From Vitrella brassicaformis CCMP3155 (taxonomy: Eukaryota > Protista > Chromerida): 64,000 nucleotides of DNA. Below, one piece after another: positions 1,086 to 50,965 of the stretch. Position 1 is the first letter of the stretch, and the number at the start of each line of letters is the position of its first letter. Position numbers and translations under genes: made by a program. The DNA is taken from the NCBI GenBank assembly GCA_001179505.1, contig CDMY01000791.1, forward strand, positions 1-64,000. The letters run 5' to 3'. Under the pieces are notes generated by a model. The model was not told the DNA's origin. It saw nothing but the letters and a program-made list of their open reading frames with translations, and searched no databases.

Positions 1086-1363
1086 CGCGGGAGAACAGGC
1101 GAGAAAAGGACAAGGGAAAACAAACTGAGAAGGAAGGAAGGCGGAATGAAGAGTGGAGCTGGGACCTATTGGGATCTGTCCCTCTTCCCATTTCCCACTG
1201 GGAACGGGACACCCAACGTCCGAAACCGAAGGCACACCCAAACGCATGCTCCGTCCAAAATGGGCAATGGGAAGTTCCCAGCTCAGATTCTTCATTCCGC
1301 CTTCCTTCCTTCTCAGTTTGTTTTCCCTTGTCCTTTTCTCGCCTGTTCTCCCGCGATGAAGGT
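1078..1363. repeat. Inverted repeat spanning the divergent promoter: 75-bp identical arms at 1078-1152 and 1289-1363, 136-bp spacer
   Basis: The reverse complement of 1078-1152 equals 1289-1363 (tcttcattccgccttccttcc...gttctcccgcgATGAAGGT). Weaker similarity extends through both first exons (975-1478). Confidence 0.9.
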
Positions 1364-4227
1364 CCTTCTGTGCCTGTTTGGTGCCCTCCTGGTGGCCGGT
1401 GCTCTGTGCGCTGATGACGTGAAGCACCCATCCTCCCTGCGCAAGCTGAGTCCTCAGGGCGTCGCTGATCCGTCGACGGTAAGGACATGCAACATGGCCA
1501 CAACTTGCTCATGCTGCCTCTGCGTCACCGTGGGTTTGCATGCGTCTGTTTATCCGTCGGTCCCTATGTGTGTGTGTGTGTGTGTGTGTATGCATGCAGC
1601 AGGGTGATGAAGCTCCTGTGAGGGCGCTGCATGGACCTCACCGCGACCACGATGATGACCATCACCACGACCATGACTACACCGACCGCGTGGCCCTCGG
1701 TTTCGTCATGACCACCATCGCCGGTAGGTACGCACGTGTGTCGATATGACGCAGATGCCTGATGTGGCGCCGGTCACTCGCTGTTGATGTGCTGTTGTGC
1801 GCGTGCAGGTTTGTCCACTGCTGTGGGCAGTGCGCTCTCCTTCTGCCTTCCCAAGCACAATGGCAAGGTACGTGTGCTGCACGTGTGTTTGAATCCGCAC
1901 GTACTCCGCGATGAATACATGTATGTCTATATCCGCGTGCGGACGCATGCCCACATTATCGGTGTCTGCAGATGCTTGCGGTGTTGTGCATGTCTCTGTC
2001 TGCGGGCGTCATGCTCTACGTGTCGTTCGGGGAGATCCTCAGCAAAAGCATCGTACGATCGATCGACATGCACGCACACGCACTCCCAACAAACAGCGCG
2101 TGCGTGTTTGTACATAAATGCACATTTTGAATGTATTGTGCAATGAATAGGACGAGTTTCGTGAGGCGATTAGCGACGGGGGGGAGGCGTACGCCAACGC
2201 TACGCTGTGCTTTTTCGGCGGTACGCTCACACGCATCCACATGTGGCCACACAAACATACACCTGCACACAAAACAAACAACATACCTACGTGTGCATCA
2301 ATCGACAGGTATCCTTGCGGCGATGCTGCTCGATTACGCCCTGGATTCCATGTTCAAAGTACTTGAAGCCAACACTCACTCCATGGACACACAATGACAT
2401 GCACAAACATCGAATGATGCCGTGACGCGTGTGCTTGCAGTGGAGCCAGACCGAGCCCGAGGCGCCCAGCAACAGCAGCCCAGTGCCCGACACATCGCCC
2501 GATGTACGAAGTGCATAGAACACAGACAGACAGACAGACAGACACGATATGACATGCCACACATAACGATTGGCTGACGTGCATGTACACATATGTGGCT
2601 GCAGAGTGGGGCAGACCGACAGCAGCTTCAAGAGGAACATAACGACACTGAGCATGGTGCGCACACAACAACCAACATCACAACCTGTGTTCGTGTACGT
2701 GAACCCATGGATATGGGCGGATGGATGGATGGAATGGTGGCAGGCGGCCGCGGTGGAGGCCCTCTCGCGCGAGAAAAAGTACTGTGTGGAGAGACACTAG
2801 CTGTGGTGGGTGCGCACACCACATACAACACACGAAGAGACACGCATATGTACGCCCTACATGCGTGTACACGGACGTGCCTCTCTGTATGATGTCCGCA
2901 CACACATGTCATGGATGTACACAGGTGATTGAGCAGTCTCTCTGCGGCGATGATAAGACCAGGACGCCGCCAACCGACGGTGAGGGCGCGTCATTCATAC
3001 GTCCGTTCACACACTCACCCGGACACGTGCATGCGAGTCGATCAACAAATACGCACGTGGTGTGTGTGTGTGTGTGTGTGTACAGATGCTGGGATTCTGG
3101 ACCAGGAGAACAGCACATCAGAAGAGAACATAAAGGAGGTCCGTCCGTCCGTACACCTGACGTGCCGGCCACGTACATACATGTGCGCATGTCATCTGTA
3201 TGTGTTTTTGATTCATTCATACAGCCTCAGAAGGGTTCGTTGGAGAAGCAGCGGGCTGACAAAGCGGCCCTCAAAAACCTCGGGATATTCAGGTACGCAC
3301 ATGGGAACGAGACGCCGACACTGCAATATCGGTTCGGTTTATCACCGATCGACCAGCGGTCTTGCACTAGCCATGCACAACTTCCCCGAAGGTTTGGCCA
3401 CGTTCGCTGCGACACTGGCGGATCCAACCTTCGGACTCGGTACGTGCCACACTCTCGCATCGCACACACGCCAAGGATTTACATTTATTGGTGTGTGCGC
3501 ACAGGGGTGGCCGTTGCCATCGCCATCCACAATATTCCCGAGGGAATTGCCGTCAGGTATACACGAATACGCGACTGACACGCACAGATGGCTCCACGGA
3601 CGGGCACTCTGCTGCCATTGTGTACATTTGATCAGTGTGCCGATCTTCTACGCAACGGGCAGCAAGTGGAAGGCATTCGGTACGTCCGCACACACATGCA
3701 CACGTACAAATTTTATGCTTCTTGTGTGGGTGTGTGGTGTACAGGCTGGTCGCTGCTCAGTGGCATTGCCGAGCCAGTTGGGGCTCTACTAGGTCAGTGA
3801 GTCAAGTGATTGCATCCATCCATTTGTCTGTCCACGCGCTCTCACACATGAATGCCACTCAGGCTACCTGGTGCTGATTCACGTGATGTCGCCCACTGCA
3901 TTCGCCATTCTGTTCGGTACGTCTGTCTGCATGTTTGTGTATGCACCCGTGTGTGCCCACATGCACGCAGTGTTCTTGTGTCTCGATGGGGCTTGGCTTG
4001 CAGGTTTGGTGGGCGGTATCATGATTCATATATGCATCAAGAAGCTGATACCCACCGCACTCAAATACGACCCACAAGTACGCCATCCACACACAGATCC
4101 ATCCTTCCTTCCTCCCATCAACACACGTGTGTGCGTGCGTGGTGTTTAGGATCGTGTGACGTCCAACACGTGTCTGCTGGGCATGGCCGTCATGGCGCTT
4201 TCACTCGTGCTGTTCCAAGTCGTCTGA
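1356..4227 (+). CDS. ZIP-family (ZupT/GufA-like) divalent metal transporter with signal peptide and His-rich N-terminal ectodomain, about 19 exons
   Basis: Spliced reconstruction gives [134 protein letters not shown] and GMAVMALSLVLFQVV, ending in TGA at 4225-4227. HNFPEG/HNIPEG are the canonical ZIP TM4/TM5 motifs. Loop exons at 2441-3290 are less certain. Confidence 0.9.
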
Positions 4228-5849
4228 CTGATTGCTTCTGTATGTGTGAGACGTCAGACGTTCTTCGTACGATTTTAGGCCATGATCTGTCCCTCCATTC
4301 ACACGACAGTGATCCTGACTCTCGAAGTAGTTCGTGCCTCTGTGCGCTTCTTTTTCGGTTTGTCATGTGCGTGTGGGGGGTCCTGGGTGCCTTGGCAGCC
4401 GTCGGTGCCTGTCAGTCATTCGTGTGACGACTTATCTGATCTGCGTGTGACGACTGACTGCACACACCCTGATGAGTGTGCCTGTGCGTGACTGCATGTG
4501 TACGATTCCATGAGGGAAAGAGAGATACACGTTTTTGTGCGTCTGCACACGCGAGGTCGACAGATACCACATGCAAACAAATAAACAAAAGAGCGTTTCG
4601 AGTCTACGTCGTTTGAAGAAGTGGAGTTCAAGCACAGGAACGTCAAGAAGGGAGGGACGGGGGGAGATGAGTCGTCACATCCATCGGAGGGTACACACAC
4701 GGGATGGACACATGAGCTGTGGGATGGGGGGAGACAGAGACACCGACCTGACACTCAAACATATCGAAGTGAATGATCCAATAACGTTTGAGTCCATCTA
4801 TCTATCCATCTGTCGACTTACCCCTCAACATTGATACTGACTCGATCAAGCTTCAGCATCACCGGATCAGCACGACAGTTTTAAGAGGAATGCCCGTCAA
4901 CTGTCATCCATCTGCACATTTCGTTTTCATTTAATTAATGATCCATTGATGTTCGGGCGTCTCCTCATCGTGTCTGTGTGTGTCTCTGTCTACCCATCCC
5001 AACCCCATGTGTCTGTCTAGCCCCCACATAGCAGTCCGTACACTCTGCGCGTGTGACCACGGCTGCTGAGTGACGGCCAGTGTGTGTATGTGCCTGTACG
5101 TACAACATACAAACGCAACCATTGATCAATCACAAAAATGTCTGCCATAGCTATCTGGTGCCAGTGGTCGCGGCGGAGGTTGTGCAGGGTGGGGGAGCGA
5201 CACACTCTTGACCACTCTGTGGTGATCAGATAGACAAGGGCGGAGATGAAGGCAGCTGCGGCTGTGCACCACGTGGCCGATAGCCATATAAAACATACAT
5301 CAAATTTGTGACTCAGGGTGGGGTTTCGCGTATTATATGCCCAAGGTAGCCGTCTTACGTGATTAGCGTTTGGAGCAAGGCGATGAATGGACTGTTGATT
5401 CAGGAGTCGCGAAAACGGACTGACAGGCAGGAAGGTTCATTCAATGAGCATCTCGCTAATAACGAGGCATCTGAGCAGCCACTGACAAACGGCATCATAC
5501 GGCATCACCAAGTCATGACACACACAACCATCCATACCGACTCTCACTGAGGACACGACACACCACACCGCAGACAGAAACTCGTATACCTTTGGTTGGC
5601 CACAGTGAGTGAGTGAGCGAGCGAATGATTCGGTGAGTGAGTGAGCAAGCAGCACCACACTACACTCCTACACCCCACGCAGTTAGCACCATCCATCCAT
5701 CCATCCAGAACACCTCTCGAGAGACCTTCGTCCATCGTGGCCATAGGCACAGCCAGCATTCATCCACGACAACGCAAACAAAAAGAGAGAGAGTTAGGGA
5801 GGGAGGGACGGAGGGAGGGAGTTTCCTGTCTGTCTGGCTGCCTAGGTGG

Positions 5850-10006: not shown

Positions 10007-13000
10007 TCAGTCTGTTGGTGTGGGATTCCACCCTGCTGGCTTGTTCTGAAGGTATGTACTCACCAGCCTCCTGTGTTTGTCCGTTGTCAGTGGTTTTGTG
10101 AAGATATCAGCAATGTTCAGTTCTGTTCTGACATGCGAGGCCTTCACTTCGCCTTTGCAGACCATGGTCCTCACATTGTGGTAGGCAGAGCGTATCGCCT
10201 TTGTCTTGTCATTGACGACATAGTTGCTTGCTGTGTGTCTTGCGCTGTCAGCGTCTGTGCGAATGTGTACGCTCGCAACGTGCCCAAACTCACTCGCTAG
10301 TCCGCATATGTGCACCAATTCGTCACAGCATCGACTCATCTCAACGTATTCAGCATCATGTGTGCTTCCTGTGACACAGCGCTGGTTTTTGCATCGCCAT
10401 GTGACCGGATTGCCATTGAGGAATATGATGTATCCACCTGTCGATTTGCCATTCTCTTGATCGAGATGGCTGGCATCGGTCATTGCGAGGAGGTGCAGAT
10501 CATCATGTTGGTCTTTGCGGAAAGTGATGCCTTGTTGTTTTGTGCCTTCCAGGTACTTGAGTATGTGCTTGACGGCATTCCAGTGTGCTGGCCCTGGATT
10601 TTGGCTGTGCATTGCGACTTCTTTCGTCGCATACGCAATGTCGGGTCTCAAGCATTGTCGACAGATACATCAGATTGCCAACTGCATTTCGGTAAGGTAC
10701 GTTGGTCATCGCAGCTTTTTCTCTGTCTGTCCTTGGCTGCATGGAGCTCCTGAGTTTGATGCTTGTTCTGGCAGGTGTGTCAGTCGCATTGGCTTGATCG
10801 ATGTGGTATTTTGAGAGTATCTGACTGACATACTCACTCTGCGACAGGTTCAGTGTGCCAGCGACCATGTCTCGCCATTCCGATGAAGCGCTTTGCGAAA
10901 CCAAGGTCTTTGATTTCAAACTTCTCTTTCATTATTGCTTTGAACCAACTTGCCGATTCATCGTGCCCTTTTGCAGGTGCATAGAGGATGTCATCGACAA
11001 TCACGCCAACCCAGAGTTGCTTCTCGTCATGGAAGTAGAGACAGGGATCAACCTTTGATCGACGGAAGCCGTGTTCTGTCAGGTGTTTGTGCAGCGTGTC
11101 ATTCCATGCTCTTGGCGCTTCTTTGAGTCCATACAGGGCTTTCTTGAGGCGAATGCATTTGCCTGGTCGCTCGTAGCCCTTTGGACATTCCATGTATATC
11201 TCGTTGTCGAGCGGTGAGTATAGGAAGGCCGTGTTGACGTCCATCTGATAGATGTCTCTGTCTTGTTTGTTCGCCATGGCCAGGAAAACTTTGACCGCTG
11301 CCTGAGACATAACAGGAGAGAAAGTTTCGCCAACGTCAAAGGGGTCTTGTGCGAATCCTGATCACGAGTCGCGATTTGAACCGTCCATCCGATTTGATGC
11401 GGTACACCCATTTGTTGGGCATGATTTGCTTTCTGACCGTCTCGATATCAACGAATTCGAATACATCCAGGTCTGCCATCGATTGCATTTCTTTGTCCAT
11501 CGATAATCGCCAACGTGGGTCTCTCTGTGCCTGCCCGTAGGTCTGTGGTTCGTCTTTTTCTGCACAGGCACCGCAATAGATGGCGTCTTCGAGCAATTCG
11601 TCGAACATTTGTTCGTCTTGTTCGGTAGGAAAGAATTCCTTGCGCAATGCATCGAAGAACGAGTTGTCTTCTGGTTGTGTGTCCTCCATGTATTCTTCAG
11701 TGCATGTTGCTGCTATTCGCGTGTCTCTGTGTGTCGTCTTTGCTGTGGGTATACGACCGACTCTCGGTTCGTCAGTTTGGAAGTGTTTCTTGCAGACATC
11801 ACAGATGTGGTTGCTGTGAGGTTGCCACAAATCGATGGTCCACGTGCCCTTGCGTACGAATCGCTTGTCGTTTTCTGACTCGAAGTGGATCGATCGGCAA
11901 TGAGGACAAATGATATCGGTAACGTAGAATTGATCAACGTTGAACGCATTTCTTGTCGCTTCGTTTGTCGTTGCGTATGTTTGTGTCTCTGCTTCATTCG
12001 GATCATCGACGACTGATAGTGCCCAATAGTCTTGGAATCGACTTGGGTATTTCTTCTCGCGTGTGGATCGGCGCAAAACAGGTATTGGCGCATTGTCTGG
12101 CATTGGCACTGCATCGCCGCCATGTATGTGCGCTCCATTGTGACCATTTGCGTTGTTCTCACCCCCTCCAATCAGGTTGTTCGTTGGGTCAACATCCATC
12201 TGATCGTTGTCTTCCTGCATGGATTGATCATCGTCACCCATCGCATCATTCTCTTCCTCTTCTTCCTCGTCTGACGAGTCGGAAGGGAAGGCGTCCGGTG
12301 GTGGAATCGGTTTGATCGGTACGCCCACTTGAGGCATCAACTCATCGTTGTCGACAGATGTTCCTTTGCTTTGACAGCCAATGTCGTCGAGTGTGAGTTG
12401 TTGTGATGGATGTAGGAACTCATGTTCGAAGAAACGGACGTCATTGCTGACAATGATGCGCCAACCTTGCGTCTTGTGTTTGACGCGTATGATATATCCA
12501 TTCTTCATATTCGGGTGGTACCCAACGAAGATGCCTCTCACTCCTGGTCCTGACAACTTGCTGATGCGTTGGCTCTTCGGTAGGTAGACAACTGCTTTGC
12601 ATCCAAACACACGAAGATGACTGAGGTCGGGCTTCTGTTTGTATCTCATTTGGAATGGTGTCTTCTGCTGGGGATTGGCCCTTGTGGGCAGCCGATTGTG
12701 TAGGTACACTGCGGTGTCGATTGCATATTGCCAATAGGCGAGCGGCAAGTTCGCATGTGCCATCATGGCTGTGCCCATTTCTCTGAGAGTCCGATTCATC
12801 CTCTCGGCTTTGCCATTTTGACGGGGATCGCGAGGTGCTGAGATCTCATGTTTTATGTTGTGTCTCGCCAGCTGACTGACGACTTTACACCAATTAGCTC
12901 TCCTCCGCCGTCTGTGCGTATGATTTCAGGTACGCCGACCGTGTTGAGGAACGATTCCAGCGCTTTTGGAGCGTCTGATTTCTTGTGGAGGAAGGCAAGG

Positions 13001-15956
13001 TACGTGTAGTTTGTGTACTCATCGACGAATGTCATGAAGTACTTCTTCCTCTGCTGGACGCTTTCAGGAAAGGGCTCTCCACATATATCTGAGTGGATGC
13101 GACCCAGCCATTTGATGGCTCTATTGGCAGTATCATCGTCTTTGTCTTTCCGAGCTCCGTGTGGCCGCTTGGTTATCTTTGCGATTGCACAATCCTCGCA
13201 GTCACACTTATGTATCGGAAACCGCAGTTTGCCTTGCAGTGTTTTCTCGAAGTTGCAAAAGCACCGAGTCAAACGCATTACGGACTTTGCGCTGCGATGC
13301 GCAGTTCTGTAATGAGCAAGCCAGTATGCCGCATTCTGACTGCTCGACCGGACTTCTGTCGGTTTCGACAGGAATGCACTGGGAATATCACCATCACATG
13401 TCTCCATTGTGTGTGGCTCCTTGTCCACTTGTAGGTTATCTTGTGGATCGAACGACATTGTGTGATGTCCCGAATGCTGCCCACGACCAAGACATTTCCG
13501 TTTGGCATCCGATGCATCAGTTGGTGGGTGGAATGAAGGTAGCTGTGCATCCATGCATTCGTTTCTGTTGAATCTGCCTGTCCCTTGACTCTTTACGTCA
13601 GCTGTGCCCTGTTTGTTTGTCTTCCTGCGTTTCGGTCCGTGTGTCTCAGATGCACCCAGCCGATCATGCGTATTGCACCAGTGTGTGTGCGCATGGGATT
13701 CTTGTTGGCTTGTATATGTTCGTATCAACTCATCCCAGCACTCATCATTCGCTCTTTGATCGTAGTAGTCTTGTAGGTCTTTGTCGGTCAAATTCCCTCC
13801 GACTGGCTCAAAATCAATTATATATAGGTCCTTTTTGGACTCAGCAACATAGGTCCTATTCGGACTTAGAATCAAACATTTCTCATCGTCAAATACTGCC
13901 TTGCAACCCAGTTTGGTGAGTGCTTTGACTCCCATGAGGTTGACTCGAAACTGCGGGACTAGTAGCGAATTGGGTAGTAGCACGTGATGCCCCTGCAGTC
14001 TGACTCGGGCCGTTCCCGTTGCTGTTACTGGGAGGATGTGTCCACTGGCCACCATGAGTCTGGGGGGTATTCTTGACCGAATCCAACCTGCAGAAACACT
14101 CAACAGAGTTGAAGATGATACCATGCAACCAGAGTCAATCAGTGCTTCGTGCGGTCGCAACACGGAGCTGACTAAGTCAACCAACTCTATGGTGACTAGA
14201 CACTGGCTGAATGAGCTTGTCTCTGGCTCAATCAGGGGCTCAACAGGAAGTTTCGTCCAGTTGAGTGGGTAAGATTCATCTGAGATGTAACCTCTCTCTG
14301 TGACAGATTCGTGTGTCTTGTCTGCAACTCTCATCGCCAGCCTTGCTTTTGCTGTGTTTGCTTCTGTTCTTTTGGCTGTTGCAGCTGTCGCAGCTACCAG
14401 GGCAAGTAAGTTGAAGAGAAGCAGCAAGTACAGGCAGATGACTTCAAGTATGCTTGCTGTACTGCCTGCTGCTTTCTTCCCTGTTCTGTCTATGCAGCCC
14501 TGAGACATGGTAGCTATCCGGCCTTGCTTGCTGTTGCTCTCATGCAACTTACGTACCGTGGGCATGCCGTACTGTACGGTCATGGCGTTGAAACCTCTTC
14601 CTCTTCCTCTTCCGCGACCTCGGCTGCGAGGAAGAGAAGCAGCAAGTACAGGCAGATGACTTCAAGTATGCTTGCTGTACTGCCTGCTGCTTTCTTCCCT
14701 GTTCTGTCTATGCAGCCCTGAGACATGGTAGCTATCCGGCCTCGCTTGCTGTTGCTCTCATGCAACTTACGTACCGTGGGCATGCCGTACTGTACGGTCA
14801 TGGCGTTGAAACCTCATCCTCTTCCTCTTCCGCGACCTCGGCCGCGACCTCTGCCTCCTCGACTGTAACCGCGACCGCGTCCTCTCTGGACGTCGTCAGT
14901 GATTCCGAGTGCTTGTTGTTCCTGTCTCATTGCAATCTGTATTGAGTCAAAGTGCTGTCCATTGTCATTCAGGCCACTTTGCTGTCTTATGTGTACCTGG
15001 ACCGGACAGCACCACCAGCCTTTCCTGTGGCCGTATCGCCCACGGTCGAAGCAGTATCCTTGGAAGTTTCGCTTTTGGCTCGGTCCTTCCTGCTGGTACT
15101 CACCCTGACTGCCAAACGTGGTACTCGGCTAGCCACCAAGTGTGCTGTTCGGTTGACTGCCACCGTATGCATTGCTGGGTTGGCTGCCGCCGTACATACT
15201 GCTCGGTTGGCTGCCGCCGTACATGTTGTTGGGCTGGCCGAGCTGCATTTTCTTCATGTAGGTGTTGCCACCATTGCCGAACACCGACGCGCCCGCAAGA
15301 CCGAAGGCCTCGCTCGTTTTGTTGTTCTGCGAGGCTTCCCAGCGGATGACTTGTTGGCGTACTGCACCAAACGTCGCAGGTGGGTGTAGGGCAAGGTCTT
15401 GGTACAGAGTGAAGTATTGGAGGCCGGCCTGCTGCAGGGCCTGTTGGAATCTTAGGATCTTGTCCTATTCCTTGAGCTCCCCTCTATCTCCACTAGCTTG
15501 TTTTGACGACTCGTTCGCCTGATCCACAACCCGATCGAGGTATTCCATATTCCTGCCAAGTGGCAGATCTTTTCTGATCGTGAAGTCGTCGAATTGTCGC
15601 CGTGTGTCGGTGGAGATCGCCTCGATCTGCTGTTGGTATTTGGCTTTGCACGCCCACCACATGGGCAGCCCGTCGCCTCTGCCCTCGTTTTCGTCGTCAG
15701 CCGTTTGGCACGCCATCATTATCGCGGAACACTTGCCGAAAGTGCGGCTGAGGGCTTGTGCGAAGATGTTCCCCTTCTTCTTCTCGGCCGGAGTCAAGTT
15801 ATTTCAGTCCTTGTCGCGCTCCTCCTCCTTGAGAAGTGCCGTGAGGTTCTCGCCCTGATAGTTGATGAGGGCATTCTTCAGCTGGAACTCATGTTGGTTG
15901 AAGAGCGTGATGCTGCTATCGAAGACGGGTATGTAGTCGGACTTGTGCGCTGCCAT
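10007..15956 (-). pseudogene. Disrupted gag-pol of the copia element
   Basis: Split over ORFs 15465-15797, 12853-14583, 11336-12799, 10834-11310 and 10007-10651 by in-frame stops and frameshifts. Contains a degenerate zinc knuckle, RG-rich and YGGSQP repeats in gag, and a 218-bp tandem duplication near 14413-14842. Confidence 0.88.
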
Positions 15957-29597: not shown

Positions 29598-30349
29598 CTA
29601 CTCTCCGTCGCCAGCCGCGGCCCCCCCACCCCCAGGCCCCCTCTCTCCCCCTTCCTCCCCATCCGCCCCTCCATGCAGCTGTGCCTCCGCCCCGCTGCCA
29701 CCACCAGCGGCGGCAGCGTTGAGCAGCCACACGCGTACCGTCTTGTCGTGGGAGGCCGAGAAGAGGAACCCGTTGAACGCACACAGAGACGACACCGCAC
29801 CCTGATAGATAGACAGACAGAGTGAGTGATACACAGACAGACAGACAGATTGGCTGGCATGGACAGATTTCCATGTCTGTCTGTCTGTTTAGTTTATTTC
29901 TCTGTGTGTGTGTCTGACGGTGTGTCCCTGCAGGTCGCCCTTGTGCCGCAGGTTGTAGTCCCATACCTGCAATGCCATGGCATTGATTGGGTATGTTCGT
30001 TCGGTTGAGTGAGTCAAGTCAGAGAGAGACACATTGTCTCTCCACTCGACTCACTCACCTTCACGGTAGTGTCCTTGGAACCCGAGAAGAGCAGCCGCTC
30101 GGCAGGCGCTGCGACCAGGCTCTGCAGACAGGACCCATATCCACACATACATGGAAAACACCACGCAAAGCGGTGGTGGTGGTGGTGGTGGTGTGTGTGA
30201 GAGTATACGTACGAAGATCCAGTCGTCGTGTGCGTGCAGCATGTGCGAGGACGCCTGCAGGTCAGCCGTCTCCCACGACTGCAGACCAGACAGACAGACA
30301 GACAGACAGACAGATGCGCACATTTCTCTCCCCCGTCCCTCTCTCTCTT

Positions 30350-30381
<32 letters not shown>

Positions 30382-31467
30382 TGAGTGCCTTGATAGATTT
30401 GTCTCTGCTGGCGGAGAAGAACCTCTGCCCCTCATCGATGACCGCAAAGGCCGTCACGCTGTCGTAGTGGGGCGGGTGGAGCGTACGCACACTGCCCCAG
30501 GAGCTAGTCGTCCACACCTGCACACACACACAAGGACACAGAGCCCTTCTATAGATAGGGCTGGGTGGGGTGAAAAGNNNNNNNNNNNNNNNNNNNNNNN
30601 NNNNNNNNNNNNNNNNNNNNNNNNNNNNNNNNNNNNNNNNNNNNNNNNNNNNNNNNNNNNNNNNNNNNNNNNNNNNNNNNNNNNNNNNNNNNNNNNNNNN
30701 NNNNNNNNNNNNNNNNNNNNNNNNNNNNNNNNNNNNNNNNNNNNNNNNNNNNNNNNNNNNNNNNNNNNNNNNNNNNNNNNNNNNNNNNNNNNNNNNNNNN
30801 NNNNNNNNNNNNNNNNNNNNNNNNNNNNNNNNNNNNNNNNNNNNNNNNNNNNNNNNNNNNNNNNNNNNNNNNNNNNNCGTACCGTCTTGTCGTGGGAGGC
30901 CGAGAAGAGGAACCCGTTGAACGCACACAGAGACGACACCGCACCCTGATAGATAGACAGAGTGAGTGATACACAGACAGACAGACAGATTGGCTGGCAT
31001 GGACAGATTGGCATGTCTGTCTGTCTGTCTGTTTAGTTTAATTCTCTGTGTGTGTGTCTGACGGTGTGTCCCTGCAGGTCGCCCTTGTGCCGCAGGTTGT
31101 AGTCCCATACCTGCAATGCCATGGCATTGATTGGGTATGTTCGTTCGGTTGAGTGAGTCAAGTCAGAGAGAGACACATTGTCTCTCCACTCGACTCACTC
31201 ACCTTCACGGTAGTGTCCTTGGAACCCGAGAAGAGCAGCCGCTCGGCAGGCGCTGCGACCAGGCTCTGCAGACAGGACCCATATCCACACATACATGGAA
31301 AACACCACGCAAAGCGGTGGTGGTGGTGGTGTGTGTGTGAGAGTATACGTACGAAGATCCAGTCGTCGTGTGCGTGCAGCATGTGCGAGGACGCCTGCAG
31401 GTCAGCCGTCTCCCACGACTGCAGACCAGACAGACAGACAGACAGATGCGCACATTTCTCTCCCCCG

Positions 31468-33087: not shown

Positions 33088-33905
33088 CTACTCTCCGTCG
33101 CCAGCCGCGGCCCCCCCACCCCCAGGCCCCCTCTCTCCCCCTTCCTCCCCATCCGCCCCTCCATGCAGCTGTGCCTCCGCCCCGCTNNNNNNNNNNNNNN
33201 NNNNNNNNNNNNNNNNNNNNNNNNNNNNNNNNNNNNNNNNNNNNNNNNNNNNNNNNNNNNNNNNNNNNNNNNNNNNNNNNNNNNNNNNNNNNNNNNNNNN
33301 NNNNNNNNNNNNNNNNNNNNNNNNNNNNNNNNNNNNNNNNNNNNNNNNNNNNNNNNNNNNNNNNNNNNNNNNNNNNNNNNNNNNNNNNNNNNNNNNNNNN
33401 NNNNNNNNNNNNNNNNNNNNNNNNNNNNNNNNNNNNNNNNNNNNNNNNNNNNNNNNNNNNNNNNNNNNNNNNNNNNNNNNNNNNNNCCTGCAGGTCGCCC
33501 TTGTGCCGCAGGTTGTAGTCCCATACCTGCAATGCCATGGCATTGATTGGGTATGTTCGTTCGGTTGAGTGAGTCAAGTCAGAGAGAGACACATTGTCTC
33601 TCCACTCGACTCACTCACCTTCACGGTAGTGTCCTTGGAACCCGAGAAGAGCAGCCGCTCGGCAGGCGCTGCGACCAGGCTCTGCAGACAGGACCCATAT
33701 CCACACATACATGGAAAACACCACGCAAAGCGGTGGTGGTGGTGGTGTGTGTGTGAGAGTATACGTACGAAGATCCAGTCGTCGTGTGCGTGCAGCATGT
33801 GCGAGGACGCCTGCAGGTCAGCCGTCTCCCACGACTGCAGACCAGACAGACAGACAGACAGACAGACAGATGCGCACATTTCTCTCCCCCGTCCCTCTCT
33901 CTCTT

Positions 33906-33937
<32 letters not shown>

Positions 33938-36651
33938 TGAGTGCCTTGATAGATTTGTCTCTGCTGGCGGAGAAGAACCTCTGCCCCTCATCGATGACCG
34001 CAAAGGCCGTCACGCTGTCGTAGTGGGGCGGGTGGAGCGTACGCACACTGCCCCAGGAGCTAGTCGTCCACACCTGCACACACACACAAGGACACAGAGC
34101 CCTTCTATAGATAGGGCTGGGTGGGGTGAAAAGTGGTGTGGCGGGCATGTTGCTGGTTGCTCGCCTTGATAGAGCGATCTCTGCTGCCGCTGACCACATT
34201 GTCACCCGGCAAGGCGTCCAAACAAAAAATACCTGGCCGTCCACAATACACACGCGCACACGCACACTAAGGTTCTGGTGGGTTCGGTTAGGTTCGGGTG
34301 GCATGTGGGTGAAGTTCCCTTCCTACCCGAGTTGTGTGCGGTGTCGAGCACGACGAGGGGCAGTAGTTTGTTCATGCACCACACCCGGATGGTCTTGTCG
34401 TCCCCGCCGCTGATGATCAGGGCCGCCGCCTCGCACAGGACGATGGCGTGCACCTCTCGGCTGTGGCCGCGCAGGGTCTTGCTGCAGCTGAACGACTCAA
34501 GGCTCCACACCTTCCACACATCCAGCCATCCAGCCATCCATCCAAGTGTCCACACCTATCACACACAGAGTGTGTGTGTGTCACAAGGCGTACCTTGACC
34601 GTCTTGTCCTGGGAGCCGCTGCAGAGCATCTTGCGCGCATAAGAGGCCTTCAGGCACCTACCCATACGGACGGCAGAGATCGACAATCAGTGTCATGACG
34701 ACATCACAGCAGGGCCGAGCAGAGTGCATTGGACCTGACGAATCCCTTGTGTCCGGGTAGAGTCCCGATGTACTGCAAGTTGTTGAGGTCCCAGATGAGG
34801 ACGCTGCCGTCCTGCCCGCCGGTGAAGAGCACGTCGCCCACTATGCACAGACTCAACACGTAACCGCTATGGCCCGTCAATATGTGCGCACAACTCTGAC
34901 ACACACACATACACACACACACTCACACAGAGAGAGAGAGAGGGGGGAGGGGGAGAGACATAGCATGCCCATGCATCCCACCACTCGACCATTCCACCCC
35001 TCTAAACGCGCCACTTACCGCGTCTATGGCACTGGGTGAGGCCCCATCAGCGGCCCCCCCGATGCCCCCCCTCCCCACTCCTCCCTTGTCCCTGGCGGCC
35101 CGTCCTGCCTGCCCATGCCGCAGCATGGCGCCGCCGCCCCCAGCTGCGACCGCTGCCTTGCTGGTGCGGCTGGGCGGGGCCGGGAAGGAGGAGAACGGCA
35201 CGGACGATGTCGAAAACTGAGGGGGCGAGGTGGGGGGGCACACCGATGGCTGCAGCACAGCACACAGGGGAAGAGACAGAGGGGTGGTCGAGTCCCGTGT
35301 GTGTCGCCCACCCACCCAGGTGCCCCACCTGTGTGTGTCTCAGTCGTGAGGTTGCGTGTGTGCTCTGTGCGCGTGCCCCGGTCTGCCTCAGTGCGTCCCG
35401 GATGTGATCACGGCCATACACAGCCCCGCGGACACCAGACCTGCAATGAAATGGAATACAATACAATACAATACAACCAACCTTAATTGTCTTCCTTTCT
35501 CTCTGCCTGCGAATCAGCGTCTCCCACTCACCGACCGACCTGTTGATGGGCTGCCTGACTCTGAGATTAGGTGTGGATGGCGCGGTGTTGCTCTGGCCGG
35601 GCTGCTGCCATTCGAGAGGCAGAGGCACGGCGGGCGGCACATCGGGGCCTTTGACGCCCGCCGCTGCTGTGCTGGGAGCGGCCCTGCTCCACGAAGCAGC
35701 ACTGGGCCCTGGCAGATAACGACAACACGACGACATCAGCATACGTGCCTTCATGAATGCACTTATGGATGTTTTGACACTTGTTCTGCTCACTTGTGAG
35801 TGCGATTTCCTGCAGGACGACGTGGGTGTCGTTGGGTATCTGCAGAAGGCAGGAGAGAATGCAGGCACACAGCACGGCACGGCACGGCACGGCACGCTTT
35901 TCGCCGCCCGCCAGCCATGTGTGCATGCATGCATGTCTGCCCTGCACCCACCCACCGTATCAGAGAGGACGAGCCCCTCCCCGTCTGTGGTCTTAAAGTC
36001 CACTGGCCCGTTGATCTGCCATCCCCGCAGAATCGCCGCCTCTATCTGTTCCACTGACGAGCCGGGGTACCAACACACTACCTGATGAAAAGACAGTAAG
36101 TACAAATGCATTCTCTTATTACTTTTCAGTGATCATGTCTGTCGCCATCCGTGGACGCGTTGAGTCACCCTTTTGTCGCCATGGGGCGTGTCCTTGGTGA
36201 CGATGAGCCGCCGCTTCGGTACGACGACCTACAAAGTATCCCGTAGGTGTGGTACATTTAACATCGTCACTGGACAACGTCACTCGGTTACGACTGACCC
36301 GCAAAGTCGCGCCGTCGAACAGCTGGTCCATCCTCTCCAGCAAGAAGAACGTGTCGCGATGCGTCGCATGGTTGACCAACAGCCTGCAGCCATCGACACA
36401 CAAGTGTAACAGTTGCCATTGCAATCAATGCCATGAAGCCAGCCACGAGTCTCAGGATTGTATAATGGTCTTGCCGCATATATCATGCTTGTGCATCCTT
36501 ACTGCTGGTCGTCCTGTATCCTGAAGATGATCCGAAGCTCCCTCAAGGCGAGGGAGGGGTCTATTTCTCTGTGGACCGCCTCCTGGTTGGGATACCGGAT
36601 GAACAGCGATAGCGAACTGCCGTCATCTGCCTTCAAATTGGCGTCCGCCAT
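33088..36651 (-). CDS. WD40-repeat protein with non-WD N-terminal region (spans a gap)
   Basis: Repeats GHSGYVLSLCIVGDVLFTGGQDGSVLIWD, GHKGFVRS, LCSGSQDKTVKVW, GHSREVHAIV..IISGGDDKTIRVW and SASRDKSIK. Probable start is MADANLKADDG at 36651. Confidence 0.8.
33187..33486. other. Assembly gap (300 N)
   Basis: Run of N. Confidence 1.
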
Positions 36652-43900: not shown

Positions 43901-46042
43901 CCCACATAGAGCTCCTTCTCGCGAGAGAGGGCCTCCATCGCAGCAGCCTGCCGACGCAACCCCCCATCCATCCATCCATCCATCCATTTATCGCACACGG
44001 AGACTACACACATATATATAAGTCAGATGGCTTGCTTACCTGTTTAGTGACGGTTTGCCTGAGGTCGGTGGCCTCGGCCTCCAGCTGCACGAGGCGGCGC
44101 TGGTTGTCGTCGTAGCGCAGCATCTTGTCGCGGGTCTCCTCGAGGGCCTCCTTCTTATGCCGGCACTCGTCAGCCAACGCCGCACAACGATGCCTGCACC
44201 CATGGCATGCATCAACAGCCAGGTCGGTCAGAAACGCGACGCCGTACACAGGTCTGTCTGTCTGTCTCTTTGTGGGTTACTGACGATAGCTCTTCGATCT
44301 GCCGGGAGCTGTCCTCCTTCACACCCTCCAGGGACACCTGCACACCACCAGCCGGGTATGCACTTACTACGTCTCAACTCAACTCAGCCGCCTAGCGGAC
44401 GCCCCCAGAAGCGTAGGTACCTGTGCGTGTGTGAGCTGCCGCTTGCACTGGTCGAGTCGGTCCTGTGCGAGTGCGGTGTTCTCGCGTAGCATCTCGAGCT
44501 CCCTGCTCTGGCTGGCCACCCGCTCCTTGTACCCCCGCACCGTCTCGTACACTCGAACCAGCACCCACTCACGCAGTGACAGCTCATCCTCACCGCGACC
44601 CCGCAACTCGAAGTACAGGTCCTCCGACAGACTCAGGTCGCGCAGCTGGTCCCGCAACACAGAGAGGTCCGCTGCCGCCTGGGAAAAAGACAGAGATGGG
44701 GATGGATGAGGTGGGTATGGGTATGTATGTGTCTGTGTGTGTGTGCTAACCCGTATGAAGGGCCCCATGCGCCTCTCCTGCTCTGTCTTGAGCTGAGAGT
44801 GTGGGAGGAGGGAGGGCGCACGGGAGGTAAAACACATGTGGCATCATATCTATCCGTGTGTGGTGCATTGCATTGCTGTTGTGCAGTTTTGTGGGTGGTG
44901 CCACTCACTCACACACCTTTGTGACTTCCTCTGCATTGAGGTCCATCTGGTTCTTCAACGTACGCTCGAACCTGCAGCCATCGACACAGATTGTACCTTC
45001 CGCTGGCCGACTGACTGACTGCACGTACGCCGCGTTTTGTGTGGCGAGTTTGAGCCTGAGGTCCAGGACTTCACGCTGCAGCGACGAGAGGTCCGACGAG
45101 GGGGGAGGCAACACCGGCTGCATGGCATGCACGACGAGACAGACAACCGGACACACAGAAGACGGACATGTGCATGCGAGGGGGCGGGCGGAATGTGTCG
45201 AGCTTCCTTACCGCTGTGGACTGTTTGGGCGGCAGCAGCATCTGCGGAGCCGGCAGATTACCACTGACCACAGACACCCGGGGAGGGAGGGAGGGAGGGA
45301 GGGAGTGTGAAGTGCGTCGATTGTTCCTTCCGCTACCCTGTGTGTGTACCTGTGCAGGTCAATCGGTATGGGCGGGATGGGGTGCGTGAAGGGCGGGCCG
45401 CCAGGCGCATCACGCGGACCACCGGGACCCAGCAAATGATCTGCTGACACACACACAACACAAAAGACAAGACAAGACAAGACACAACACAACACAACAC
45501 AACACACACATGTACAGGGCATGGCATGCACATTCATCAGTCAGCTGGGGCCAGTGCAGTGCGGTGACGAAGCGCAAGAGCTGTGCGTTGTGTACCGATA
45601 TTGAATGAGTCTGACTCAGAAATGGGCGACTGGTCCGTCACAGAGCCCTGCAGTGAGTGCATGACATGACCAAAGTCCGAGTCCGTGTGTATGTTGTGTT
45701 GTGTGTACGACGGACGATATGCAATAATACATGTGCTGGCTGACTCACATGTTCAGAGTGCTGCCGCCTGCCGACGTGTGCCGCGGCATCGTCCTCCTCG
45801 TCAAGCCCCTCGTTCTGACCCAAATCCACAGAACTCTCGGACCCCTGAATAGAATGAGCAGAGGCATGCAATTCACAAGTGAACAAACAGCAAGGCAAAC
45901 ACCAACACACAAACAACCGAATGAGTAGACAAGGTGCATGCACACGCGGTGCATCGTCCCGTGCGGTGGTAAGGTAGGTAGATGGATGGATGGTGGAGGC
46001 CCAGGCCTCTGCTGGTGTCCCTCTTACCGCGAGTGTGTCCAT
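40973..46042 (-). CDS. PIBF1: PIBF1/CEP90-like centriolar coiled-coil protein (many exons; ends approximate)
   Basis: LSLSEDLYFELRGRGEDELSLREWVLVRVYE, LKVKSFELDRLGVAHEETLRLLQKSQMD and DKPTAFLTNALR resemble conserved PIBF1 blocks as I recall them. This was not database-checked. Confidence 0.6.
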
Positions 46043-46464
46043 TCCCGCGACTTTCGGGCTCTTCCGGATGTCGGGCCGCAGAGGTCGGCTATAGTCTAAT
46101 TGGTTTTCTCCCAATACAAAAACGGGGAGAGCCGAGCCGGCGCGAGCTTTGCGAGGGAGGCAAAGCGCATCAAATTCACAGATGACAAACACACATACTC
46201 ACTCTCTACTCTATGTACCTCAGGTTGCCCCTCGTCGCTCCATTTGCCGCACGCGGAGTGTTCGTTCGTTCCCGGAATGCGAAGTGGAGTGTTCCGAGAC
46301 CGGCTGGATAGAGAGGAGAGCTGTCTTGTGCGTCTTCGCATTCATTCTGTCTTGCATCAGACTCCGACCGCTTGCAGCCTGCTTGATTCGTCAACCATCT
46401 GTCGGCATTCCAGTGCTATATCTGTGCGTTCAGTCCATTCCGAACCCTGGATTGTTCTCCCGCG

Positions 46465-47532
46465 ATGAAGCTGTTTCTGTGCCTTGTCGGCGCCCTCCTG
46501 GTGGCCGGTGCTGCTGCTGACGTGAAGCACCCACCCTCCCTGCGCAAGCTGCAGGAGTCTACGGCCGTCACTGATCCGTCGACCGTAAGAAATTCACGGC
46601 CACCCACCTGTGGTCTCTCTGCACTATGCATGTGCACGCATTTGTCTGTCTGTCTGTCTGTCGCTGCTTCGTGTGTGTCTGTCATGTGTTTGCAGGAGGT
46701 GACTGTCCCCGAGGAGCCTGAGATCCCTCCTGAGGACTCCGAAGGTGGCGACGAAGATGACGACGATCTTGAGGTGGGTGCGGGAGCACTCAGCCACACA
46801 CACACATACTTAGCGCTCGCAGACCAGCCATGTGCCTGTGTGCGGGTGTTTGTTTGTCTGAGTACAGGAAGGTGATGACGCCTTTACCCCAAAGGTGGGC
46901 GAACAGCACTTTGCACATAACACATACAGACTGTGAACGTCTGTCTGTCTGTATCGATGTGTGTATCATGTACTACGTGTGCAGGAGGGTGACGGCGAGG
47001 AGCGGAGGGCGCTGGGGACCTGGTGCGGGCACCACTGTCACCACCCCTGGTGGTGGTACCATCATCACCACCCCTGGTGGTGGCACCCTCACCATCACGG
47101 CCACCATGGACACCACCACCACGACCATGGACACCACCGGATGCTCTCCGAGGTGGGCAAGCGAACAACATAACACATATAGACAGCGGCACTCACGCCA
47201 GACACAGAACCATGTACGTACGTATGTCTGTCTGTCCGTCTGTCTGTCTGTCTATCTGCATGGCTGTGTGTGCAGGAGGGTGATGAACCTCCTGTGAGAG
47301 AGCTGCATCCCCACTATCACTGTCACTGGGTCTGGTCGTGCCACCGGATGCTCTCCGCAGAGGTGGACGAACACGACACCACACACACAGGCAGCGACCC
47401 TCACCCCAGACACAGAGCCTTGCACGTCTGTCTGTCTGCCTGCGTGTGTGTGTGCAGGAGGCTGCTGAAGTTCCTGTAAGAGAGCTGCATCCCCACCCTC
47501 ACTGTCACTGGGTCTGGTCGTGCCACCGCTGA
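46465..47532 (+). CDS. Secreted multi-module His/Trp/Cys-rich peptide precursor (family member C), about 184 aa, 6 exons
   Basis: Exons 46465-46584, 46696-46773, 46868-46894, 46985-47152, 47276-47362 and 47458-47532 are all phase 0 with canonical GT/AG. Same leader as members A, D and the ZIP gene. Confidence 0.82.
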
Positions 47533-47612
47533 CATCACCTCCACAACTGTATGTCACATTTTTGTAATCGCATGATCCCTGAGTCGCGCTTTAGTGTGGT
47601 GTGGATGACTGT

Positions 47613-48375
47613 GTGACTGCTGGCTGGGCTGTGGGTGTGGGAGAGTGAGATTAGCCACATGACGTCTGAGATGGCTTGCGTCCCTACTGATGTGTCTGTC
47701 ACACAGTAGCTCGTCTCTGCCTGCCTGTGGCTCGTCTCATGGCTCCCTGTGTGTCTGGCTGGTGTTGGTTGGGCGAGAGTATGTCTTTATGCGTTTTATG
47801 TGTTTTATGTGTACCCGTATGAATGCCCCCCCCCATCCATCCATCCAGCCGCGGCCTGTTGGCTGGTCAATCTCTTTCTGCAATGTTATTGAAGATGTTT
47901 CTTCAATGCACATAGTGTAGTGCATGAAAGATTCGTGTCACTCGTGGACTGGTCGGTGCCTGGGTTTTTGTTTTTGCTTTTGCCTTTTTTGTTTGTGTTT
48001 ATTTTTTTGGTGTGTGGGAGCCAGGGTGTATGGAGGCGCTCTCAGCACCAGTCGGTGTGTGGCAGTCGTTTATTCTTGAAGAGTGCTCGTTCATCGGGCT
48101 CTGATCTATATTTGTCACTCTGGCGGGCTCGGTGTATATGGGTGCATGTACTGCATGTGGGAGGTGGAGGGGCAGCCACAGAGAGGGGAGGGGAGGGAGG
48201 GGGAGATGAGTCGTCACAATCCATCTTGGGGGTACACACATGGATGGGATGGACACGGATGGGCTGGACAGAGACACCGACAAGACACTCAAACATATCA
48301 ACGCATCGAGTGGATGATCCATCGCGGCCATTCATCCATCCACCCACCATGGTCATGAACCCTCAACGAATGTCA
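47613..48375 (+). repeat. Direct repeat of about 760 bp, copy 1 (3' flank of member C); copy 2 at about 50196-50965
   Basis: gtgactgctggctgggctgtgggtgtgggagagtgagattagccacatgac... continues collinearly in both copies. Sub-blocks also occur at 376-525 (inverted), 49790-49930 and 4655-4790. Confidence 0.85.
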
Positions 48376-49137
48376 AACAGCCACATCCACCGACATCCAC
48401 CTACCTTTACACCTCACGCACTTAAAGAACGTCTTTGCGCACGAATGCTGTCTCACCATGACGATAGCCCGTGTCTCTGCCATGCCTGTGTATCTCTACG
48501 CACATGCACAAATACTGCACGACCGAGTGCACTTGATTTGTGCGTATACGTTTATTTCGTGGGTCTCTTGTCCAACCGATGCCTACGTGCATGTGTTAAG
48601 TCATTGAGCTACTTCATCCCGCCTCCACAGTGACCGTGTGAATGAGTCTGACTGACACTACGGATTGAAAGCGAGACAGAGACACGTGGTACGTCGGTCA
48701 GACGCATCCATCAGTGGATACACACCACATCGAGGAAGACAAACACTTCCTGCTCATAGACATACACATCGGCTCTACACATATGCGAGAAACAGCAACC
48801 TGATACGTCCGTGCCTTCGAGCACTCATCTGCACCATTAAAGGTCATCGCATCCTCTCTCTGACCCATCGCGACGTTCAGGCGCAGCTGCTATCGCAACT
48901 TCACGCTCTGGTGCCGTGGCTGTGCATGGAGTTAGTGACTAAGTCGCTAAACATATTATCGCGTTTCTGCTCACGTTCCCTCTTCTCGCCTGTCCCGGTC
49001 CAAACGGGTGGGAAGAGAGAGAGAGGACAGATTCCAGCTCCAGATTCGTCCGACTCGTTCCGCTCCAGATCTTCATTCCGCCTTCCTCCCTCAGGTGACT
49101 GTTGTCCTTTGTCGTTTCTCTCACTTGTTCTCCCCCG

Positions 49138-49716
49138 ATGAAGCCGCTTCTGTGCCTGGTTGGTGCCCTCCTGGTGGCCGGTGCTGCTGATGACGTGAAG
49201 CACCCATCCTCCCTGCGCAAGCTGCAGGAGTCGACGGTAAGCAATGCATGACCGCTTGCGCTGCTCTCTAGGCCGCTATGCATGTGCATTCGTGTGTCTG
49301 TCTGTCGCTGTCTTGTCATGTGTGTCTGTCTGCATGTGTCTGTGCAGGAGGGTGATGACGATCCTGAAGTGAGGGCTCTACAACCCGGCCACCACGACCA
49401 CCACCATCCCCCCCCAAGCATCAAACCCGGCCAACACGACCGCCACCATCACCCCCCAAGCATCAAACCCAAACCCGGCCACCACGACCACCACCATCCC
49501 CCCCCAAGAATCAACTTCCACTCCCATGAGGATGACTGTGATTGCTGGTGCGGTGGGGGGTTGCCGGGAAAAGATACCCACGGTAGCCAGCGCACCTACA
49601 ACTGTCCGTGCGAGTGTCGTCATCACTGGCGTATGGGTTGTGACTGCAAGTGTGGCCATCACCACCACGAGGGTCCTTACACCCTCTATCATCCCTGCGA
49701 CTGCACCTGCTACTAG
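49138..49716 (+). CDS. Small secreted His/Pro/Cys-rich protein (family member D), about 155 aa, 2 exons (49138-49236, 49348-49716)
   Basis: MKPLLCLVGALLVAGAADDVKHPSSLRKLQEST, a phase-0 intron, then EGDDDPEVRALQ, three imperfect PGHHDHHHPP repeats and the 12-Cys domain shared with member A. Confidence 0.85.
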
Positions 49717-50195
49717 TGTGTTGTGTACGTCGATGGCAGTCAGGCGATGTCAATCAGGCGTTGCCAGTCAGTCAGTCGAGCTATGGAGGGGAGAGAGAGA
49801 GATAAGCCACATGACGTCTGAGATCCTACTGATCTGATCTGATCTGATCTGATCTGCGGTGGTGTTCCATTCACACAAGTACCTCGTCTCTGTTTGCCTG
49901 TGGCTCGTTTTGTTGCTGTTTGTGTTTCTGGCTGTTGTTGATTGGGTCAAGGGTCATGTGTGTATGTGTATTTGTGTACACCTTATTTTGCCAGTGCCCC
50001 CCTCCCCTGGTGGCTGGCTGCTCTTTGCCTTCAATGTACATCGCCTGTTTCATGACGTATTTGTGTTGCGAAGTGGCAAGCGTCCGTATGGGTGCTTTGT
50101 CCACCGAGCTCTGATCTGATTTGCTGTGCATGACTGGCTGAGTGGATGTGCACATACATACCTGCATGTATTTCATGTGTTACGTATGTGAGTCA

Positions 50196-50965
50196 GTGAC
50201 TGCTGGCTGGGCTGTGGGTGTGGGAGAGTGAGATTAGCCACATGACCTCTGAGATAGCTTGCGTCCCTACTGATGTGTCTGTCACACAGTAGCTCGTCTC
50301 TGCCTGCTTGTGGCTCGTCTCATGGCTCCCTGTGTGTCTGGCTGGTGTTGGTTGGGAGAGAGTATGTCTTTTTGTGTTTTATGTGTACACATATGAATGC
50401 CCCCCCCGGTCCATCCATCCATCCATCCAGCCGCGGCCTCGTGGCTGGTCAATCTCTTTCTGCAATGTTATTGAAGATGTTTCTTCAATGCACATAGTGT
50501 AGTGCATGAAAGATTCGTGTCACTCATGGACTGGTCGGTGCCTGGTTTTTTGTTTTTGCTTTTGCCTTTTTTGTTTGTTTATTTTTTGGGGGTGTGAGAG
50601 CCAGGGTGTATGGAGGCGCTCTCAACACCCGTCGGTGTGTGTCAGTCGTTTATTTCTTGAAAAGTGCTCGTTCATCGGGCTCTGGTCTATATTTGTCACT
50701 CTGGCGGTCTCGGTGTATATAGTTTCATGTACTGCATGTGGGAGGGGGTGGGGCAGCCACGGACAGGGGAGGGGAGAGACGGGGGGAGATGAGTCGCCAC
50801 AATCCATCTGGGGTACACACATGGGATGGACACATGGATGGACACGCATGGGATGAGATAGACAGAGACACCGATGAGACACTCAAATGCATCGAGTGAA
50901 CGATCCATGTGGTCCACATGTATGCATCCATCTACCACGGTCATGAACATTCAACGAACGTCAAC
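50196..50965 (+). repeat. Direct repeat of about 760 bp, copy 2
   Basis: Collinear with 47613-48375. Confidence 0.85.

Follow-up and report, generated by a model that had tools for sequence, protein, structure and literature searches.

The window, as the 64,000-nucleotide (nt) stretch analysed here is called, covers the first 64,000 positions (1-64000) of contig CDMY01000791.1 in the genome assembly of Vitrella brassicaformis CCMP3155 (GCA_001179505.1), so that window and record coordinates are the same. On its plus strand, at 46465-47532, lies a six-exon gene whose product is a candidate secreted precursor of several His/Trp/Cys-rich peptides set off by R-x-L (RxL) motifs. Its introns are all of the GT..AG type and 90-123 nt long, and the lengths of all six exons are multiples of three, which puts every exon in phase 0. 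Splicing the six exons listed below in silico gives a protein of 184 amino acids (aa) containing 32 His, 11 Trp and 7 Cys, letter for letter the product spelled out in a first-pass annotation that had been made from the sequence alone; the assembly annotation already carries a gene of identical span with a 184-aa product. The parts of the gene, with the basis for each, are as follows.

46169-46464, plus strand: 5' untranslated region (UTR)/leader of the transcript, about 296 nt, from likeness to the transcript contig L002 and from RNA contig X1 record 1
46465-46584, plus strand: exon 1, predicted signal peptide (residues 1-18), then DVKHPPS-LRKLQE and AVTDPST; the common leader exon of the family, from the splice and hydropathy
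46696-46773, plus strand: exon 2, acidic pro-region, from the splice; sequence reads carry GGT behind 46743
46868-46894, plus strand: exon 3, an acidic mini-exon of 9 aa headed by EGD and without a payload, from the splice
46985-47152, plus strand: exon 4, module 1, with EGDGEER-RAL, a 41-aa core and RMLSE, from the splice and the RNA join to exon 5
47276-47362, plus strand: exon 5, module 2, with EGDEPPV-REL, the 13-aa core HPHYHCHWVWSCH and RMLSAE, from the splice and RNA
47458-47532, plus strand: exon 6, module 3, with EAAEVPV-REL, the 13-aa core HPHPHCHWVWSCH, R and the stop, from the splice and RNA
47533-47955, plus strand: 3' UTR; RNA contigs reach 47637 and cover 47665-47955

Logan contigs from two RNA-type runs (X1, X2) and two DNA-type runs (X3, X4) were mapped on 46000-50000. 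The RNA contig X2 record 9 (574 nt) runs uninterrupted over 46983-47150/47274-47360/47456-47637, which corresponds to the joins of exons 4, 5 and 6 with a 2-nt ambiguity at the AG, and its first 137 nt begin with 29 nt from exon 1, go on through exon 2, which has an additional GGT, and finish with exon 3. The same joins are found in X1 record 3, where 87 nt -- the length of exon 5 -- lie between its two pieces, and X1 record 1 spans 46264-46481. The six-exon splice proposed from the sequence is thus present in RNA, as the 4-5-6 joins and as pieces of exons 1, 2 and 3, and the gene is real and expressed. The contigs of X3 and X4 read through the introns and are therefore DNA. No exon skipping was seen among the listed RNA contigs, which cannot exclude rare isoforms. 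All four runs carry the GGT insertion behind 46743, which adds an in-frame Gly to exon 2, so that the true product is probably 185 aa long, one Gly more than the model. At 46511 and 46522 the sole contigs of DNA run X3 have the variants (Ala16Val, Val20Met) of a second copy of the gene, on contig CDMY01000844; these variants and the GGT insertion indicate an error in the reference, a difference between strains or the collapse of the two copies. Three ATGs, at 46182, 46213 and 46277, precede the main start codon within the 5' UTR, the first of them with an open frame that is 100 codons or longer and extends beyond that start codon, which suggests either translational control or a start of transcription further downstream than the transcript of the paralog in L002 implies.

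The only hydrophobic stretch of the protein is residues 1-22, with a Kyte-Doolittle maximum of 2.6 (residues 3-17) and values never above 1.0 elsewhere; the signal peptide, predicted from this hydrophobicity and from an AxA-type cleavage region, has Lys at position 2 and AAA in the cleavage region. The RKL of exon 1 sits 9-11 residues beyond its predicted end, and LRKLQE is followed by a 57-aa acidic stretch with a net charge of about -20 that ends in RAL. Targeting to the plastid was considered and rejected, the region behind the signal peptide being strongly acidic. In each of the three modules that follow, an acidic spacer leads into [VR]R[AE]L and this into a core made up almost entirely of His, Trp, Pro, Gly and two Cys; core 1 has 21 His, 7 Trp and 2 Cys, and an internal 27-nt repeat in it encodes PWWWHHHH. 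The residues are sharply segregated: the cores contain every one of the 11 Trp, 31 of the 32 His and, exactly two in each core, the 6 Cys that are not part of the signal peptide; the pro-region and spacers account for 32 of the 34 Asp and Glu. RML comes after cores 1 and 2, and core 3 ends in Arg and the stop codon at the position where core 2 continues as R-M-L, which fits a boundary there.

Outside the signal peptide, six of the eight Arg and six of the eight Leu form R-x-L, a number reached in 0 of 200,000 shuffles (p < 5e-6). Two of the RxL pairs are duplicated, leaving about four independent motifs, and at least four arise in about 1.5e-4 of shuffles; the RxL bracketing is not a product of chance. 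The acidic spacers and bracketed cores described in the first-pass annotation are thus borne out by the splice, the residue counts and the shuffles, as is its description of exons 5 and 6 as near-duplicates, which are identical at 67 of 75 nt. The likeness is uneven, 49 of 51 nt over REL-core-R (both differences falling in one codon, Tyr to Pro) and 15 of 21 within the spacer. Introns 4 and 5 match each other at 84 %, which shows that exon and intron were duplicated as one unit; introns 2-5 are mutually similar and all begin GTGG(G/A)..GAAC, from which it appears that the array grew by tandem duplication of such exon-plus-intron units.

Three other genes of the window each open with a further copy of the leader exon, beginning at 49138 (+), 1356 (+) and 1085 (-).

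1356-4235, plus strand: ZIP metal transporter; exon 1 is the family leader, and exon 2 (from 1600) has QGDEAPV-RAL, HGPHRDHDDDHHHDHDY and the first transmembrane segment
591-1085, minus strand: paralog with leader exon (978-1085) and an exon at 591-851 with EGGDSLEL-RAL and a Cys/His-rich domain; head-to-head with the ZIP gene
49138-49716, plus strand: tandem paralog P0001, 155 aa, with leader exon, EGDDDPEV-RAL, a His/Pro-rich stretch and a Cys-rich CxC domain

P0001 is carried in databases as a protein of V. brassicaformis CCMP3155, and in both it and the minus-strand paralog the leader is joined to "EG[DG]..[VL]RAL", a His-rich stretch and a Cys-rich CxC domain. When all six frames of the window were scanned with the regular expression '[EQV]G[DG]x2-6 [VLR]R[AE]L', the module was found at six real places, 1600, 851(-), 46985, 47276, 47458 and 49348, each time immediately before a payload. 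It also occurs, despite unrelated payloads, in the paralog P0002 and in the ZIP gene of contig CDMY01000844 (L003), and the succession of acidic spacer, R-x-L and payload is a conserved cassette of this family. The transcript contig that encodes P0002 (L002) matches 46169-46582 at 94 % identity in its 5' UTR and leader exon and then continues into a Cys-rich payload, which indicates that a cassette of leader and promoter has been recombined with different payloads. The sharing extends to the 3' UTR, where the 18-nt element AGCCACATGACGTCTGAG, which includes the near-palindrome TGACGTC, lies at 47653-47670 and again at 49805-49822 and 50236-50253 with one mismatch, three matches in the window where none is expected by chance. 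A further copy lies at about 753-770 of L002, and in the 3' UTRs of the gene at 46465, of P0001 and of the P0002 transcript the element stands about 90-120 nt past the stop; it may be a shared element of post-transcriptional control. The 3' flank of the gene (47600-48060) is repeated downstream of P0001 (50180-50640) with about 80-89 % identity, placing the two genes within a larger tandem duplication with an extra remnant of 3' UTR.

When 1.84 billion representative proteins were searched exhaustively with a profile, only P0002-P0005 were returned, and word-index protein searches gave no relatives besides the Vitrella sequences P0001-P0005. P0003, P0004 and P0005 map to contigs of the Vitrella assembly, and P0002 is confined to a JGI sample that also contains a P0004 transcript 100 % identical to a Vitrella contig. 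All sequences returned being from Vitrella, the family is an orphan of this alga. No Pfam family was matched by any exon or paralog; the ESM Atlas gave only compositional look-alikes of exon 4 (0.63), which are not evidence; and an exact scan of metagenome and metatranscriptome contigs with the 24-mer coding for CHWVWSCH had 0 matches. The literature searched gave no work on this family or on RxL processing in chromerids, and no protein-level study of Vitrella.

Family members vary in the leader motif (RKLQE against RKLSPQ or RKLAPQ). In P0005 (L006 8001-8782, CDMY01000400.1) the annotated third exon starts at 8559, and an alternative, upstream acceptor at 8413, in the phase typical of the family, would give an exon (L006 8413-8631) encoding an acidic stretch ending in RML and then a strongly cationic 49-aa peptide rich in Arg, Cys and Trp, with 6 Cys; the annotation may have used the wrong acceptor. 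A 24-mer of this alternative exon had 0 matches in the exact scan of metagenome and metatranscriptome contigs. The mRNA of P0004 (L004; L003 10001-10621) has an EGDGRAEL-RAL module and a Trp/Arg/His-rich stretch out of frame with the annotated 116-aa open reading frame (ORF), and its exons are not all in phase 0, which means either that this paralog has decayed or that the splicing is alternative.

The one functional context seen for the cassette is metal transport. After its RAL, the ZIP gene at 1356 has a 17-aa stretch rich in His and Asp, HGPHRDHDDDHHHDHDY, before the first membrane segment, and this region of the window is 85-88 % identical in nucleotides to a gene on CDMY01000844 for a 453-aa protein with the ZIP domain PF02535. 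Both ZIP genes open with the leader, RAL and a His-rich stretch, which forms the ectodomain. The order of genes on CDMY01000844 is ZIP (453 aa, PF02535), P0004 head-to-head with it, an inverted paralog, and P0003, a 92.6 %-identical copy of the gene at 46465 that lies about 4 kb from the ZIP gene and is interrupted within exon 4 by the end of the contig. Family members thus stand head-to-head with a ZIP gene on two contigs, at 591-1085(-)/1356(+) in the window and as ZIP/P0004 on CDMY01000844. That CDMY01000844 might be an allelic haplotig was considered and rejected: the gene order differs, and the ZIP genes are just 85-88 % identical.

Taken together, these features suggest, tentatively and largely by analogy, that the gene encodes a secreted pre-pro-polyprotein of metal-binding peptides, cut at RxL in the manner of the silaffin precursors of diatoms; we give this reading the first place among those considered, at somewhat less than even confidence. 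An RxL-specific endoprotease in the secretory pathway would cut after the Leu, much as cutting occurs at the RXL domain of diatoms, the RXLR of oomycetes or the PEXEL and TEXEL of apicomplexans; in a relative of the Apicomplexa the obvious candidate would be a clade-D aspartyl protease like plasmepsin V or ASP5. The acidic pro-region and spacers would be removed, freeing three peptides, one about 41 aa long and two 13 aa long, whose C-terminal R(ML) tails may be trimmed as are the RRIL/RRNL tails of silaffins. Until then the acidic spacers would neutralise the cores, or hold them metal-free, in transit. The freed His-rich peptides would bind divalent metals (Zn, Cu or Ni), either extracellularly or within the secretory system, and would share a physiological context with the ZIP importers that have the same leader and a His-rich ectodomain, as a peptide-type zincophore. 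RxL-directed processing is taken as the most likely mechanism of maturation because the layout is that of the diatom precursors and because cleavage at RxL occurs in oomycetes and apicomplexans. Metal capture by the His/Cys cores is favoured, as the best-supported of the candidate roles, because metal transport is the sole functional context observed; the first-pass suggestion that the cores act as metal chelators gains indirect support from the leader and RAL that precede the His-rich ectodomain of the ZIP proteins and from the clustering with ZIP genes.

The earlier proposal of a multi-core precursor therefore stands in part. The anatomy of the protein, the conserved cassette, the segregation of residues and the two Cys in each core speak for it, while its comparison with precursors of ribosomally synthesized and post-translationally modified peptides (RiPPs) finds no support, there being no recognisable modifying enzyme nearby and no exon that matches a family. 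It also puts forward a Cys-HWVWS-Cys disulfide loop, which may form in two of the peptides. The genes within about 6 kb encode a 905-aa protein (no Pfam match), the paralog, a 262-aa protein (no Pfam match) and an EMP24/GP25L protein; with no recognisable modifying enzyme among them and nothing from the ESM Atlas or Pfam, the RiPP reading was rejected.

Several observations weigh against an RxL-cut precursor of metal-binding peptides. The leader of P0005 has no RKL, and the inverted paralog on CDMY01000844 reads RAT at the junction in place of RAL. The RxL count is inflated by the recent duplication of exon and intron, being about four in independent motifs, not six, and His-rich stretches can also be generated by slippage; there is a 27-nt repeat in exon 4. 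On the side of metal, the gene lies 42 kb away from the ZIP gene of the window, and the two ZIP clusters are paralogous, so that the linkage may reflect a single ancestral event. Between the gene and its 92.6 % copy, finally, exons are 98.1 % and introns 96.5 % identical, which gives no clear sign of purifying selection.

An alternative is a His-rich metal binder that is secreted intact or held at the wall or membrane and loses no more than its N-terminal pro-region, the internal RxL motifs being just parts of a duplicated module that stay uncut and the whole chain serving as a multivalent binder or buffer. The cassette needs only one junction, all other members having a single RAL ahead of the payload; the internal sites arose by exon-intron duplication; the ZIP genes keep the same module within a membrane protein; and in oomycetes a second, more internal RXLR stays uncleaved (PMC11754927). 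The internal spacers, however, retain in full their acidic character and the R-x-L sites flanking every core, every core comes with a Cys pair of its own, the chain stops precisely at the Arg of the RML position, and diatom precursors are cleaved at every repeat (PMC4557024). An intact binder is a possible but rather unlikely account, the strongest of the alternatives to a cleaved precursor.

If the chain is cut, the peptides might instead be antimicrobial or allelopathic, their His/Trp cores being cationic at low pH and inserting into membranes, with the spacers masking them until cleavage and with metal secondary or potentiating, as for histatins. The net charge of the Trp-rich cores would go from about 0 at pH 7 to +3.8 (13-mers) and about +15 (core 1) at pH 5.5, the acidic pro-pieces offer a balancing negative charge, and two putative payloads of the family, that of L006 8413-8631 and that in frame 1 of L004, would be strongly cationic and rich in Arg, Trp and Cys. 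The cores would, however, be near neutral at the pH of seawater; the cationic payloads lie out of frame with or outside the annotated models and are unconfirmed in transcripts; and the argument is one of composition, with no likeness to a known antimicrobial-peptide family found in the Pfam and ESM Atlas searches, while the sole functional context observed is metal transport. We consider this quite improbable.

Less probable still is a structural precursor, whose His/Trp/Cys segments would be cross-linked in the thick wall of the Vitrella cyst or sporangium, or would template a mineral or polymer as cingulins and silaffins do. The signal peptide, acidic RXL domain and RXL-ended repeats match those of diatom wall proteins, some of which are rich in Trp or Tyr (PMC4557024, PMC9650480), but the Vitrella protein has only three short cores and no long repetitive scaffold, is without Lys/Ser-rich or KXXK-type regions, and has as family partners ZIP transporters and CxC-rich domains of metal-binding aspect, not wall proteins. 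The least probable account is that of a young orphan gene of fast turnover and no settled function, a side effect of slippage and of the shuffling of leader exons, transcribed without being selected: the family is confined to Vitrella (4 representatives in 1.84 billion proteins), its copies are very similar with no clear conservation of exons over introns, some members look decayed or frame-shifted (P0004/L004) and three ATGs stand in the 5' UTR, yet the gene is expressed, frame and phase are kept in all six exons, the cores are nearly identical (49/51 nt) while the spacers diverge (15/21), and the design recurs consistently in paralogs and in functional ZIP genes.

Elsewhere in the window, two long ORFs (487 and 576 aa) at 11336-14583 on the minus strand have the integrase-like and Gag/protease-like content typical of a Ty1/copia-type retrotransposon. 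Runs of N lie near 26.5, 30.5 and 33.2 kb, and the minus-strand ORFs at 30014-31108 and 33621-34304, which flank assembly gaps, share a long identical stretch that is either a local duplication or an assembly artefact.

What the preferred reading would add is an RXL-delimited, multi-unit secreted precursor in a new lineage, with a new His/Trp/Cys payload and with a leader shared with ZIP transporters, both the cutting and the role in metal binding being well-motivated proposals. If the motifs are cut, a free-living photosynthetic cousin of the malaria parasite has many natural RxL substrates unrelated to export into a host, and the origin of PEXEL and TEXEL, as well as their link to the unexplained RXL protease of diatoms, can be tested directly in an alga that grows in culture. 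Should the cores bind metal, they belong to a peptide-type zincophore system whose binder and ZIP importer are built from the same module of leader and ectodomain, of which no description was found in the literature searched; the 13-residue cores are short enough for immediate synthesis and testing. A bolder proposal joins the two, namely that Vitrella has a general secretory R-x-L code homologous to PEXEL/TEXEL, RXLR and the diatom RXL, ancestral and later co-opted by parasites for host-targeted export, and that this gene is a polyprotein releasing peptide zincophores, or metal shuttles, for the ZIP importers that share its leader and have a His-rich ectodomain to match; as a whole we hold this to be unlikely.

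Among known systems, the plan recalls the precursors of amphibian skin peptides and conotoxins, in which a conserved leader is combined with a hypervariable mature part, and the plant shepherins, in which a precursor holds multiple copies of a His-rich peptide. Shared with these are the conserved cassette of signal and acidic pro-region, the differing payloads, and the placing of several cores between acidic spacers; the Vitrella gene is not known to be homologous to any of them, and their cleavage takes place at dibasic (KR/RR) sites, through subtilisin-like convertases, instead of at R-x-L.

The link to ZIP genes resembles that in the fungal pair PRA1-ZRT1, where a secreted metal binder is genetically linked, often head-to-head, to a ZIP importer (PMC3386192), and its counterpart Aspf2-ZrfC. 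Vitrella family genes likewise lie head-to-head with ZIP genes, and the near-copy of the gene about 4 kb from one, its peptides being putative metal binders. Unlike that pair, the Vitrella genes have no homology to Pra1/Aspf2 (no Pfam match), would yield short peptides rather than a folded protein of about 300 aa, and share a leader exon between binder and transporter; the gene described here is, moreover, 42 kb from the ZIP gene of its window.

As a chromerid alga, Vitrella is a close free-living photosynthetic relative of the Apicomplexa (PMC4501334), in which PEXEL of Plasmodium is cut by plasmepsin V in the endoplasmic reticulum (PMC4740378) and TEXEL of Toxoplasma is processed by ASP5 (PMC8540915); the RXLR of oomycetes is cut after the Leu prior to secretion (PMC11754927). 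All three are R-x-L motifs placed in a disordered region shortly past a signal peptide, and cutting takes place behind the Leu, in the endoplasmic reticulum or the Golgi, ahead of secretion; the Vitrella protein likewise has an R-x-L shortly past its signal peptide. RxLxE is fitted by RKLQE and RMLSE but not by RALGT, RELHP (twice) or RMLSA, and RRL occurs in none. In contrast to PEXEL and TEXEL, there is no host cell for export, the sites in Vitrella are multiple and internal, and four of the six are without E/Q/D at the fifth position.

The Vitrella protein agrees in layout with the wall precursors of diatoms; Vitrella itself is not known to make silica. RXL processing of secreted multi-unit precursors is described for Sil1p, silacidins and cingulins (PMC4557024) and for the RXL domain of Sin1 (PMC5525289); in diatoms a protease that has yet to be identified sets the units free and takes off their RRIL/RRNL tails (PMC4557024, PMC5525289). 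The Vitrella protein and the diatom RXL precursors (Sil1p of Cylindrotheca fusiformis, silacidins, cingulins, Sin1) alike have a signal peptide, an acidic stretch that ends in R-x-L, and units with R-x-L tails. In Vitrella the sites, at each of which cleavage would occur, are an RKL past the signal peptide, an RAL or REL in front of every core and an RML behind it. No sequence homology to silaffin, cingulin or silacidin accompanies this, and the payload is rich in His, Trp and Cys, not in Lys and Ser. Vitrella is, besides, an alveolate, and every unit of its protein, unlike those of the diatom precursors, has its own acidic spacer and its own exon.

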